64,000 bases of DNA from Bugula neritina (GCA_964035545.1 OZ037770.1:2572462-2636461), one strand, 5' to 3'. Shown: positions 40,201-49,200, counted from the first letter of the stretch. The notes: generated from the sequence alone by a model not told the origin. Made by a program: numbers and translations.

Positions 40201-43200
40201 TGGAGTTCCAGCAAAGTAAAGTGCTCGATATCACGGGTGACAGAGCTAATATAATGTAGTGTGTTCAGATTGTTAATGATACATATATTTTTTTTATTTA
40301 AAAAATCTCACACGACTATATAGTTTCGTACAGTAAACTGCACTCGTCAGGTGTTGGACCAAAAATAAATAAAATCTATGAAGCATACCGATTATTCAAA
40401 TTTCTACATAAAGAAAATTATCATGCTAAACACAACGTAAAGCGAAATGCAAACATAGTAGTGGCTTTGGTGTTATATATTAATTAATTAAATTGCTCTT
40501 TTTCTAAAGGATTAGACTATAAAAGCTAGATGTTTGATGGAAAGGCTAATTTATAATAGGTAGTAATATGGTTGAGAATTGATAGTATTGTTATGTGATG
40601 TTGCCCAGGTAGTGCTTACGTGCATGTCTGCATGTGGATAGAATCTCATTTCTGTTATTAAGGGAAGATTTGCTGGGCTGGTATATTATGAAATATTGTT
40701 CCCATAAGCAGAGGTTGCACCTTTTAGTGACTTTGTTGTATGAGTTGGTCTTTTTCATAATTTTCCATGTTATGTCAAAATGGGTGTTATTGTCTTTTAG
40801 TTTCCAGATATATTTGCTCAATTCAGTATGGTTCTTTTTTGTTTTGTTGTTAAAAGTTGATTTGTGGTTATACAATCTGGTTTTGAATTCTGTTTCTGAT
40901 GTTCCCACGTAAGTCTGGGGTTGGCTGCCATCTTTGGTTGTAACTGTAGCTTGGTATATGATGCACTTTGTGAGGCATTTTCCATCTAGTGGGCACACTG
41001 TGCTGTTTCTGCAGTTACATTCACGAGGAGGTTGGTTTGCTGGGTTGAGTAATATTTTATTGTGGCTGTTGATTATGTTGTTTAAATTTCTGCAGCAGCT
41101 GTAACTGAGTTTTATGTTGTTTTTGTTGAAAATTTTGTAGACTTTGTGATCTTTGGGTATTTCTTCCTCCAGGATTTTAAAAAATTGTTTTTCCAGGTTG
41201 CTTGTTACACTTTTGGAGAATGGGGGGTTATACCATGTGATGTTTCGTCGTCTTTCTCTTTTTGGTCTGCTAGTGGTGTGTGTTGGCTGGAATGTTAGGT
41301 TATGTGTGTATCCACTTTTACTTAGAGCTTCTTGGTGTATTTTTGTTGTTTGACTGAAGACTTCTTCGTTAGATGAGAGATTAGAGAGCCTGTTGTTTAT
41401 GGCTTGTGGAATGTTTCTTGTGATATGGGGTGGATGGTTGGATTTGGAGTTTACATATAGGATTTCGCTGTTAGGTTTTACATGGGGTTTGTGTGTTCTT
41501 TTGCTAATGTCAAAATTTATATCTAGATAGTTGACGACTTTTTTGTTTACTTCAATGGTGATATTTAGATTATGTTTTTGGAAAATTTTGCAGATTGATT
41601 TTTTAATTATATCTATATTTTTTGCAGTGTTGTTGATTACTCCTAGGCTGTCATCACGGTATAAACCGAAGGCTGCTAGAAAAATACTTTATAATTTGCA
41701 AGCCACATCTATCTTCACTCAACAGCCGCAATGAGATAATAACAACATGCAGGCACGCTAGAAAGCTCCTCCTAGAAAATGTGACTTGACATTTTAATCT
41801 CGTAATCACTTTTATTCCATCTATTTATGTATTTTAATCCATTGGCGTTATAGCTTTTACATACATTTCTCATACATATATATAGTATGTTTTTATTCTT
41901 GCTACATTACATCTTAACATTTTATCTGAAGATTGTGTACATTCTATGCACATGAAACTAGTAGTAATAAAGTGTTTTAAATCAAATTTTATCGTTCATT
42001 ACTTTTATTTACTCTGCTCTGCACTGCATTGAGCTCTTTTTAGTGGTAAACTATACACCATTTTATATATATATATATATATATATATATATATATATAG
42101 GTATATGTATATGTATATTACTAATCACTACATACTGGTAAAGTATAAATGGCTGCTTTAACATTTATAATATTTTTTTTTGGTACATTAAATTATGTAA
42201 TGGCATACCTTAAAAAAATACGATTTATTTAATAGATTAAACTATTATATGCCTTCAAAGAAATAGTTCATTTTATTTAGCAATATATATTGGCATACTC
42301 TAGTGCTTATAGACCAGTTACTACTTGGTATTCATATAAAATGTTCAAAACAAAAACTGTGACACACAAACCTCTCAGGTAGATCAGATAATTTACAGGC
42401 TTTCATATCCAACTTTGCGAGTGATGTGAGTGATAACACAACTTCTGGTACTGTGTTGAGAGGATTATCTCCTATCTCTAGTTTCTCTAACTGAGTCAGC
42501 TGACACAGACTGTAATATAAAGTGTATGGGATACATAATGTTATAGTGTATCATAATAATGTATACTATATATTATATGTTACTTTTGTATACAACAAGA
42601 AAGGTATAGAAGAAATAAACTTATAGCAATGAGGCAAAAAGTGTTCGCCATACCTAAGTGGAAATCTCTAGGCTACTGCTTTAACAATCATGGCTTTTAA
42701 AAATAGGTCAAAAGTATTGAGATAGTATATAATCACTATTAAATGACATAAACTTATGGCAATGGAACAGAAAGTGTTTACTCTCTAGCTATATTATACC
42801 AACAAGTATTAAACATTTTATAACATTCAAGAAGTTTAAACTATAACCATTTACAGCATATTATATATATATATATATATATATATATATATATATATAT
42901 ATATATATATATATATATATATATATATATATATATACTAAACTGTAATATAGTTTAACATGAGCACTCTTTGACAATTAGAGTAATAATTGAATATATA
43001 TATATTAGACTATTGTCTGCCTCTTTGTATCCAGCTGACTAAAGCTATAGACAGTACCTTGAATACATTTTCACAAATAGTCTGACAGAACAGTGGGTTA
43101 AGTTCGCAATCTTGGATAAAAAATTTTCTTTCTTGATTATTTATCTTGGGAGTCAAGGTAAATGTTTCTAGGTGGGTATGGACCTGTCACCCTTGAGAAT

Positions 43201-46200: not shown

Positions 46201-49200
46201 GTAGATACATTTGAATTATAAACAATCATCTGGTGCCTGGCGGCCATCTTGAATTTCTCAGAATGCTCAAGGGTAGGAAGTCCACACCCACCTGGAAGCA
46301 TTTACCTAGACCCCATATTTGAATAATCAGAAGAGAAAAAAACTTTATTCAGGATTGCGAACCTAAGTCAAAAACTGGTGTTTTTCTGCCAGACTAAAAA
46401 TACAATCACCTTAAAACACACCCACCTTTCAGGTAGATCAGATAATTTACAGTCCCACATATATAACTCTTTAAGTGATGTGAGTGAAGACACAACTTCT
46501 GGTACTGTGTTGAGAGGATTCTCTCCTATGCTTAGTTTCTCCAACTGAGTCAGCTGACATAGACTGTAATATAAAGTGTATGGGATATGTAATATTATAG
46601 TGTATCATAATAATGTATACTATATATGTTACTTCTGTATACAACAAGAAAGGTATATAAGAAATAAACTAATTATGGCAATGAGGCACAAAGTGTTCAC
46701 GGTACCTAGGTGGAAATCTCTAGGCTACTGTATTAACAATCATGGCTAATAAAAATAGGTCAGAAGTATTGAGATAATATATATTCACTATTAAATGACA
46801 GATGTCTGCTTAATATAGCTATATATCAGCAAGATTTAAACATATTATAGCGTTTAACAATGTTATAATATAAACTCTCACCATTTACAGCATAAATATA
46901 CTAAACTGTAAGTATACTTTCACATGAGCACTCCTTGACAATTATAGGAATAATTAAATATATATTTTAGACTATTGTCTCCCCGTTTTTTTCCAATTGG
47001 TAAAGCTATAGACAGTATATCTTAAATAATCTTTCACATGTTACAAAAACTGTGACACACAAACCTTTCAGGTAGATCAGATAATCTACATCTACACATA
47101 TTCAACTCTTCAAGTGATGTGAGTGATGACACAACTTCTGGTAGTGTTGAGAAAATTCTCTCCTATGTTTAGTTTCTCCAACTCAGTCAGCTGACATAGA
47201 CTGTAATATAAAGTGTATGGGATACATAATCTTATAGTGTATCATAATAATGTATACTATATATGTTACTTTTGTATACAACAAAAAAGGTATAGAAGAC
47301 ATAAACCTATGGTAATGGACCAGAAAGTGTTCACGGTATCTACATGGAAATCTATTGGCTACTGTATTAACAATCACGGCTAATAAAAATAGGTCAGAAG
47401 TATTGAGATAGTAATCACTATTAAATGACAGACATCTGATTAATATAGTTATATATAACCAACAAGTGTATTATAATAATGTATACTATACATGTTACTT
47501 TTGTATACAACAAGAAAGTATAGAAGAAATAAACTTATATGGCAATGGAACAGAAAGTGTTGACTCTCTAGCTATCTATCAAAAATATTTAAAAATATTT
47601 AGCATTTAACAGTGTTATAGTCCAAACTATACTACCATTACCAGCATATATACTAAACTCTCATTTAATACTATTACCTTATACACTCCGTAACAATTAG
47701 AGTAATAACTGAATTTATATATTAGACTATTGTCTTCCTCTTTCTTTCTAATCGAATAAAGCTATAGAAAATATTTTGAATAATTTTTGCATATCACAAA
47801 AATTGTGACACACTCACCTCTCAGGTAGATCAGATAATCTACATTTCCACATATTCAACTCTTTAAGTGAAGTGAGTGATGACACAACTTCTGGTACTGT
47901 GTTGAGAGGATTCACTGCTATGTTTAGTTTCTCTAATTGAGTCAGCTGAGGTAGACTGTAATATAAAGTGTGTAATATATTATGTAGTTTACTGTATCAT
48001 AACAGTGTATACTGTATATGTTACTTGTATATTCAACAAGAAAGGTATGTAAGAAATAAACTTATGGAAATGAGGCAAAAAGTGAACACGGTACCTAAGT
48101 GGAAATCTCTTGCATGGCTACTGTATTAACAATCATGGTTAATAAAAATAGGTCAGCAGTATTGAGATAGTATATAATCACTTTTAAATGACATGCAGAT
48201 GTCTGCTTAATATAGCTATATATCAGCAAGATTCAAACATATTATACCGTTATAATATAAACTCTCATCATTTACAGCATATATACTAAACTCTCATATA
48301 CTTTTACTCTAACAGCACTCCGTGACAATTAAAGTAATCATTGAATTTATATTTTAGACTATTGTCTGCCTGTTTTTTTTCAATTGGTAAAGCTATAGAC
48401 AGTATACCTTAAATAATTTTTACAAGATACAAAACTGTGACACACCCACCTCTCAGGTAGATCAGATAATTTACAGTCCCACATATATAACTCTTTAAGT
48501 GATGTGAGTGATGACACAACTTCTGGCAGTGTTTTGAGATGATTCTCTCTTATGTTTAGTTTCTCCAACTGAGCCAGCTGACATAAACTGCAGTATAAAG
48601 TGTGCGATATGTGTAGTACACTGCATCATAGTAACATATGCTATATATACACAAGGAAAAACATGCAATAAATAAACTTATTGCAAAAAGGAACAGCAAA
48701 ATTTTTATATTAAACTCAGTTGTAAGGATAAGAGGTACTCTGTGGGCATTAGAGCAGTGAGTTTTATTTTTCAAGGTTAAGCTGTCAGTTTAGTAGATAA
48801 GAGTTCAATCTACAGTACTATGAAAGTTGATATAATGACATTGTATTATAGTGTATCTCTACAGTTGGTGACATAAAGTGCCTTCCTTATAATCTTATAT
48901 AATATCTGTTACTTTTGTACTCATAACTACACATAAAACAGTCATGCTCTATGATTGATCATATGAAGTAACAGTTCAGATTTTGTGACCCTCTTTTAGT
49001 TCCTACATCTGAAACAGCTGGTGTAACGGACACAATGTTTTACATATTGCTATTAGTTGTATACCATGTATGATGATAATTTGACTAAAAATATACTTTA
49101 GAATACAGTTATATATAATACATAGTCATATGTTATACAAATAAAAAATGTCATCTACCCTCTATACAGTTGCTGTAATAAATACTCACTTGTTTAAACT

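Follow-up and report, generated by a model that had tools for sequence, protein, structure and literature searches.

A tandem array of hypervariable two-repeat LRR exons in a putative ROCO-caspase gene of Bugula neritina

We analyzed a stretch of 64,000 nt from Bugula neritina (GCA_964035545.1 OZ037770.1:2572462-2636461), which will be referred to as the window and from the start of which all coordinates are counted. Between 42372 and 48587 its minus strand carries five paralogous exons in tandem, each flanked by AG and GT and encoding leucine-rich repeats (LRRs); these exons are called cassettes here. They belong to a predicted gene of approximately 39 kb on the same strand that consists of a start exon, the five cassettes, an LRR-Roc-COR exon, a linker and a complete caspase. 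Searches and structure models were made exon by exon. From 5′ to 3′ the exons are as follows, with a slash marking exon-intron borders.

49190-49416, minus strand: start-codon exon; ATG at 49416, 75 codons plus 2 nt, donor AA/gtgagt, phase 2 out
48450-48587, minus strand: LRR cassette 1; 138 nt, two 23-residue LRRs, intact
47818-47955, minus strand: LRR cassette 2; 138 nt, intact
47065-47200, minus strand: LRR cassette 3; 136 nt, internal frameshift (2-nt deletion, codons 19-20), splice sites kept
46426-46563, minus strand: LRR cassette 4; 138 nt, intact
42372-42509, minus strand: LRR cassette 5; 138 nt, intact
34996-37001, minus strand: large exon; three more LRRs, Roc GTPase, COR-A/COR-B and a Cys/His-rich tail, 668 codons
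~32188-32283, minus strand: acidic linker exon; tblastn with the neighbouring gene's linker open reading frame (ORF), and an ORF
19925-20110, minus strand: caspase p20 exon, first part; PF00656 at 19922-20068 with 37.1 bits, tblastn, and an ORF
19349-19573, minus strand: caspase p20 exon, second part; PF00656 at 19352-19570 with 40.4 bits, tblastn, and an ORF; catalytic His (MTHG) and Cys (QACSG)
10408-10539 (approximate), minus strand: caspase p10 exon; GTWFIRAL, tblastn with the neighbour's ORF and Watersipora P0029
~10120-10240, minus strand: last coding exon; tblastn with the neighbour's ORF and Watersipora P0029

In each cassette one leading base completes the codon begun in the preceding exon and AG is left over at the 3′ end, so that the flanking introns are both in phase 2. 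An intact cassette thus provides 45 codons and a shared junction codon (AG/T, Ser), in total 46 residues, the second repeat of which reads LTSLKELxMxxCxLSDLPE. The LRR core LxxLxLxxN/CxL is present in the cassette translations with a period of 23-24 residues, and Pfam LRR_8 and LRR_4 match the repeats adjoining the cassettes. As the tandemly duplicated unit comprises exon plus intron (632-755 bp, repeat families D2-D7 in the window), the cassettes do not represent chance matches. The introns of cassette 1 are orthologous to those of L013_9270 in the neighbouring gene L013 and the introns of cassette 3 to those of the intact cassette L013_8627, with an intron divergence (p) of 0.07 in both cases. 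An earlier note on this DNA, made from the sequence alone, had described five exons of 138 nt in phase 2/2; copy number, coordinates, AG and GT flanks and phase hold, but one of the five measures 136 nt. All motifs listed there were recovered in the translations (NIRENH, NIAVNP, NIGENF, SIGENP and EIGDNP; YMWDCK, NMWKCR, NMCRCR, YMWDCK and DMKACK; LSDLPE). Both motifs of cassette 3 are among them, but they had been taken from two different reading frames.

The region of the start exon is conserved (72-83%) in five paralogous loci. A splice acceptor (cag) is located just upstream of it at 49424-49422, and RNA-like contigs extend beyond the start exon, upstream of 49416/49422, with letters that are absent from the window, as after splicing. 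This suggests a 5′ exon in this gene or in its paralogues. A search of the window that allowed up to 3 mismatches did not recover such an exon, which probably belongs to paralogue transcripts.

The large exon follows an acceptor (cag/G) that is phase-compatible with the cassettes and ends at a probable donor (T/gtatgt). Its Roc domain was detected by Pfam with 29.9 bits (cut-off 27), the THKD motif can be read, and approximately 450 residues follow. Within the family, Pfam detected Roc in 36 of 40 members, COR-A in 27 and COR-B in 8 of the 40 aligned relatives; in the window protein the COR-A match is weak (E 0.01). Searches with phmmer against solved structures recovered LRR and Roc but not COR, so detection of COR required family scanning and fold comparison. 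The AlphaFold2 model of the exon, built on an alignment of relatives, reached a predicted local distance difference test (pLDDT) of 88 and a predicted template modelling score (pTM) of 0.87 and showed beta-strands every 23-24 residues in the LRR part. Its top Foldseek matches in the PDB were LRRK1 (3e-22) and the LRR-Roc-COR structure 6hlu of CtRoco from C. tepidum (1.4e-19), and LRRK2, RocCOR 3dpu and COR 3dpt (1e-8) were matched as well, with ~650 columns overall. According to this model the residues after Roc are COR, giving a Roc-COR tandem. The assignment to ROCO proteins made in the earlier note is thus borne out by the Pfam match to Roc and by the fold matches. NLR identity was considered and rejected, as no NACHT or NB-ARC match was obtained in the window protein and the fold matches are ROCO GTPases; a weak NACHT match occurred in 1 of 40 relatives. 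In the tail behind COR-B (34996-35200, minus strand; residues ~602-668), W602, C613, H615, C616, P624, C656 and P662 are invariant or nearly so in 40 relatives, and the pattern CxHC...C is suggestive of a small metal-binding module lying between COR and the linker to the caspase.

The caspase end of the gene is absent from the earlier note. It comprises a p20 with the His-Cys dyad (PF00656 cut-off 21.4 bits) and a p10. Strand and order of the exons, the same layout in paralogues and the RefSeq models of Watersipora argue that the caspase exons share a transcript with the LRR-Roc-COR part. A minisatellite of 21-nt units (18724-19377) adjoins the p20 exon bearing QACSG and overlaps its 3′ end; it is open on both strands and reads TTRYKLD on the plus strand. 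In the neighbouring paralogue (L016 2163-2423, 1.9 kb past the window end) EASSG replaces the caspase motif QACxG, which reads QACSG in the window gene; catalytically competent caspase domains thus occur in this family alongside others that lack the Cys.

At least 40 paralogous copies of the large exon, with 71-84% identity, were counted in the genome; most share its contig, and the nearest are located 33 kb ahead of the window and 3.6 kb beyond it. A cassette 20-mer, which is present with at most 2 mismatches in 90 of 90 sampled intact cassettes, yielded 341 genome matches compared to 0-1 for the control. Cassettes were sampled from the window and from 20 paralogue loci of 10 kb, most counts per gene being lower bounds. 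Altogether 94 near-full cassettes were obtained from the window and 14 of the 20 loci (1 to at least 15 per partial locus), all flanked by AG and GT; 90 are intact with 138 nt, one carries an in-frame 9-nt deletion and three are frameshifted. The neighbour L013 has three cassettes, the window gene five, other genes at least 8, at least 10 and at least 13, and L001 at least 15; one array also holds tandemly duplicated blocks of cassette units with identical flanking introns. The gain and loss of exons proposed in the earlier note is therefore visible both among paralogues and within an array. Other arrays matched by the 20-mer (G000:C6:6032984-6073349) show a spacing of 343 and 442 bp compared to the usual ~570-640 bp and may represent another subfamily or have shortened introns.

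In public data, 109 cluster representatives match the large exon at E <1e-30. Two annotated full-length proteins of the bryozoan Watersipora subatra, XP_067947674 (annotated as 'MFHAS1 homolog') and XP_067948342 ('uncharacterized protein'), combine LRRs, homology over the whole Roc-COR exon and Peptidase_C14. Their LRRs are also encoded two per exon, with exon lengths of 141-153 nt, and the LRR-Roc-COR exon is single there too. A relative from the brachiopod Lingula shows LRR-Roc-COR-A-COR-B together with a weak, below-cutoff CARD match. In our judgement the window gene is likely to be one member of a large, lineage-specific LRR-Roc-COR-caspase (ROCO-caspase) family in an animal genome.

Characterizing the 90 intact cassettes clearly demonstrated where they differ. 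Seven of the 45 codons (11, 13, 14, 34, 36, 37 and 39) show an entropy of 1.95-3.05 bits, and all others stay at or below 1.4 bits. These hypervariable codons correspond to LRR positions 5, 7 and 8 of both repeats and to position 10 of the second (numbering L1xxL4xL6xxN9), which agrees with the earlier placement of the variable sites at the non-leucine positions of LxxLxLxxN/C. LRR positions 2 and 3 (E-K and K-E) are invariant, and the exon outside the hypervariable codons is nearly uniform, silent sites included. In the window alone, 7 of 7 hypervariable columns vary compared to 9 of 38 other columns (Fisher p = 2.5e-4); variation is thus concentrated on the positions that had been called exposed, but nine framework columns vary as well. 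A two-repeat AlphaFold2 model of the cassette, with a low pLDDT of 66, places strands at residues 10-13 and 33-36.

The site-wise ratio of nonsynonymous to synonymous rates (dN/dS, omega), which the earlier note had proposed as a check, was estimated by SLAC-like parsimony counts on trees built from exon plus introns or from introns only. Omega was ~4.3 at the seven codons compared to 0.5 elsewhere, each of the seven being individually significant. In 23 independent sister pairs the proportion of nonsynonymous differences (pN) at hypervariable codons was 0.222, intron divergence 0.065, the proportion of synonymous differences (pS) 0.062 and framework pN 0.031, and hypervariable pN exceeded intron divergence in 17 of 21 informative pairs. 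The hypervariable codons thus evolve faster than both silent sites and introns. Two pairs of young duplicate genes, aligned over kilobases, gave the following divergences, p referring to hypervariable-codon bases versus introns.

L001/L002: hypervariable-codon bases 17.9%, framework 1.1%, introns 0.37% (p 2e-17)
L009/L014: hypervariable-codon bases 26.5%, framework 3.4%, introns 2.0% (p 4e-30)

Between near-identical introns, exons rich in hypervariable changes show additional silent and framework changes as well, which does not fit point mutation and selection alone. Adjacent multi-base changes were seen too, for example in three bases of one codon. Hypervariable and framework divergence reach family-wide plateaus (0.34-0.41 and 0.07-0.08, respectively) once introns differ by ~3%, beyond which their Spearman correlation with intron distance is 0.04 and 0.19. 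Silent diversity of the framework is 0.11, threefold below that of introns of the same units (0.37) and the large-exon pS (0.34). Replaced exons sit between near-identical introns, and partial donors are present in the same array. A further line of evidence comes from codon 42, which is GAT (Asp) in 5 of 5 window cassettes and in 0 of 86 others. Since the introns of cassettes 1 and 3 identify as their orthologues (p 0.07) neighbour-gene cassettes that carry ACT at this codon, GAT must have spread within the window array. As read from sequence, these patterns indicate that exon content is uncoupled from the flanking introns by an exon-limited exchange with a shared pool, and that it attains the diversity of the whole family very soon after a gene is duplicated. 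The main visible route of retuning is then the transfer of exon content from one cassette to another, in addition to changes in exon number; it was overlooked in the earlier note.

The uniform exon framework would supply the homology for conversion, which the diverged introns do not. Gene conversion would move variable patches between cassettes, and diversifying selection would prevent homogenization of the seven codons. Exchange should homogenize these codons, yet they show a 3.7-fold excess of diversity over silent sites, which argues for selection maintaining diversity. The explanation that we favour, and hold with good though not full confidence, is that the cassettes are interchangeable two-LRR modules in the sensor arm of a ROCO-caspase, diversified by conversion and diversifying selection.

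Several points weigh against this explanation. In deep comparisons hypervariable pN is only ~1.1-1.25 times intron divergence or large-exon pS, so an omega above 1 depends on the silent sites within the exon, and these could themselves be constrained. The dN/dS values come from parsimony counts in which recombination is not taken into account. For the replaced exon L009:4002-4139 a perfect conversion donor was not found, the best among 40 scored cassettes being 93% identical. The location of the variable residues in and just after the strand of the concave sheet is predicted from the LRR motif and the low-confidence cassette model; it agrees with textbook LRR geometry and amounts to no strong structural test. 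That the ROCO part is spliced to the caspase is deduced from gene models of Watersipora, and ligand, sensor function and caspase activation are our inferences as well. The RNA-like contigs could stem from any paralogue, no transcript being specific to the window gene, and this gene copy may be non-functional in view of the frameshift in cassette 3 and three intronic transposons.

The seven positions might alternatively be free of constraint and drift neutrally, with the framework kept uniform by concerted evolution or by nucleotide constraint such as splicing signals; a depressed dS would in that case simulate an omega above 1. In favour of this, conversion is clearly active; when all pairs are compared, hypervariable pN (0.42) differs little from the divergence of introns (0.37) and the pS of the large exon (0.34), and framework pS is 0.11. 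Conversion tracts, however, should homogenize the interleaved hypervariable codons too, and these retain 3.7 times more diversity. In the young duplicates, framework divergence equals or exceeds that of the introns, so that no strong constraint on silent sites is seen, whereas the hypervariable codons are 13-48 times more diverged than the introns. We therefore regard neutral drift as unlikely and retain conversion combined with diversifying selection.

The frameshift in cassette 3 bears on the state of this gene copy. The change, at 47137-47143, is CACAGTACC to CACTACC, by which the two repeats fall into different frames; if the cassette is spliced in, an in-frame stop is encountered within that exon, so a full-length protein is obtained only if cassette 3 is skipped. 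Every part of the gene apart from cassette 3 is intact. In addition, three insertions are located within the gene.

43124-46339, no strand assigned: insertion between cassettes 4 and 5; 3.2 kb, 102-nt inverted terminal arms, 80% complementary
~24000-31400, minus strand: Gypsy-type long terminal repeat (LTR) retroelement; GC-rich, integrase SH3_Tf2-1 and a gag-like ORF, intronic
~11646-18400, plus strand: second Gypsy-type LTR retroelement; reverse transcriptase, RNase H and integrase, between the p20 and p10 exons

With the first of these insertions the spacing of cassettes 4 and 5 is 4054 bp compared to the usual ~640 bp. It looks like a DNA transposon; its 130-aa ORF (44195-44587, minus strand) has no Pfam match, and parts of it are covered by contigs of RNA-like runs. 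The two Gypsy elements, with 47-57% GC, lie inside an AT-rich gene whose introns are also filled with AT-rich repeats. Parts of the minus-strand element are shared with the neighbouring paralogue L013 at 89-93% identity, so its insertion is older than the duplication of the two genes. Long (AT)n tracts are found at 22000-24000, 40000-40180, 42063-42100 and 42860-42940; the 2-kb AT block at 22-24 kb contains 5.6% G+C and has no counterpart at the orthologous position of L013. Between cassette 5 and the large exon, the long intron carries a Cys-rich ORF of 135 aa (40591-40998, minus strand) without Pfam match, in a stretch that L013 lacks; the ORF probably belongs to another mobile element.

These observations raise the possibility that the copy is a decaying pseudogene which inherited its cassette pattern from functional relatives, the pattern then being silent on the present function of the locus. 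The 2-nt frameshift and the presence of two Gypsy elements and one insertion with inverted ends within the gene fit such decay, and so do the three frameshifted among 94 sampled cassettes and the lack of a gene-specific transcript among the short RNA-like contigs of bulk runs. On the other hand, the transposons are all intronic, the Watersipora homologue likewise spans 57 kb, and the symmetric phases of the broken exon would permit its skipping. The start exon, four cassettes, the 668-codon large exon, the caspase His/Cys and the p10 exons are intact, and the large exon has stayed open despite a pS of ~0.37 to every paralogue, with pN/pS of ~0.3-0.4. Decay of this copy is thus a possibility of some weight, though clearly not the one we would expect. 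That the 2-nt deletion is an assembly error, all five exons having 138 nt, appears very unlikely to us. It would be a single small indel in a repeat-rich family, with data from no second independent individual, but its site is neither a homopolymer nor a simple repeat. Contigs of the DNA run X1 cover the bin and list no inserted letters, which is a weak argument because X1 may be the assembled sample itself. We take the deletion as real and the family-wide pattern as that of exchangeable cassettes under diversifying selection.

A DNA-like run covers both exons and introns of the cassette region, whereas contigs of the RNA-like runs X7, X8 and X9 are confined to exon bins and parts of the transposons and never lie on cassette introns. 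This argues that cassettes of the family are transcribed and the introns removed. With a length of 40-170 nt, 95% matches and a uniform framework, the RNA-like contigs are not assignable to a single gene. One contig has a loose end at 46565 (CTCAGGTAG) that fits a junction to an exon ending in ..CCTGAGAG, that is, cassette 1 or 2, and does not fit cassette 3, which ends in ..CCTGAAAG; it was not counted as evidence for skipping. Since all junctions are in phase 2, any subset of cassettes keeps the frame, and the exon skipping proposed in the earlier note, which we treat as a hypothesis, is mechanically possible. A more far-reaching proposal is that the cassettes are used combinatorially in one animal, either through exons being included or skipped under regulation (Dscam-like) or through somatic conversion from one cassette to another, and that the family constitutes the pathogen or allorecognition system of colonial bryozoans that triggers caspase-mediated rejection. 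We consider this a long shot; if true, it would generate receptor diversity from cell to cell or from zooid to zooid.

The encoded protein would be a one-piece cytosolic sensor. A ligand bound to the LRR face would change the GTPase or dimer state of Roc-COR and thereby bring caspase domains together, and the joined caspases would set off either cell death or a proteolytic signal, serving defence or allorecognition. Receptors that combine a diversifying LRR surface with a nucleotide switch are well known with NACHT or NB-ARC domains in plants and animals. Versions with a Roc-COR switch are known to us only as brown-algal candidates. Here an animal lineage has expanded the Roc-COR version to dozens of genes with hundreds of modular exons and appears to have joined it directly to a caspase, and one polypeptide could run from recognition to proteolytic output. 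We know of no natural ligand of a ROCO protein, even for LRRK2, and the family might offer a physiological input-output logic for these proteins. To our knowledge, pathogen defence and colony fusion or rejection of bryozoans have so far no molecular description; the genes presented here are candidates for both. With exon content changing 10-50 times faster than the adjoining introns, the interplay of conversion and selection also becomes measurable. No paper on an animal ROCO-caspase family was found in the literature searched.

Among described systems, the brown-algal LRR-ROCO family of Ectocarpus and Saccharina comes closest; in it, 72-nt phase-2 exons encode one LRR each and are shuffled, sites on the concave face are positively selected, and alternative splicing occurs (PMC3341825, PMC11378527). 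Both families place N-terminal LRRs before Roc-COR, encode them in equal-length phase-2 tandem exons whose number varies between paralogues, show positive selection at a few positions of the concave face, and consist of clustered genes proposed as immune receptors. They differ in that the Bugula exons have 138 nt and two LRRs, and in that the algal family, for which no caspase is mentioned, faces an animal family with a full caspase after COR. Alternative splicing of LRR exons is documented in the algae and only hypothesized here, whereas the window family shows exon-limited conversion, and the term 'gene conversion' is absent from the 2012 brown-algal paper. The likeness is one of mechanism only and does not imply common descent of the exon structure.

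Animal ROCO proteins of the MFHAS1/MASL1 type, under which name RefSeq lists the Watersipora and Lingula relatives, share the order LRR-Roc-COR and show homology in sequence and predicted fold over ~620 residues. Unlike them, the window family adds a C-terminal caspase, dozens of clustered copies and a hypervariable LRR arm made of cassette exons. Lamprey and hagfish variable lymphocyte receptors (VLRs) resemble it in the hypervariable concave face of the LRRs, the many LRR cassettes and conversion-like copying between cassettes. The donor segments of VLRs, however, are untranscribed and copied somatically into one incomplete gene, whereas in the window family every cassette is an ordinary exon flanked by AG and GT and the diversity seen is germline and lies between paralogues, with nothing in the contigs of bulk runs pointing to somatic change.

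Plant and animal NLRs of the STAND class, including the inflammasome with caspase-1, likewise link an LRR sensor diversified at xxLxLxx to a nucleotide switch and a death effector, and they too form clustered multigene families with gene conversion between paralogues. In the window family the switch is a Roc-COR GTPase rather than a NACHT or NB-ARC ATPase, and the caspase is fused in cis instead of being recruited through CARD or PYD adaptors. By analogy, the family may thus be likened to an NLR or inflammasome condensed into one chain, although it is itself no NLR.

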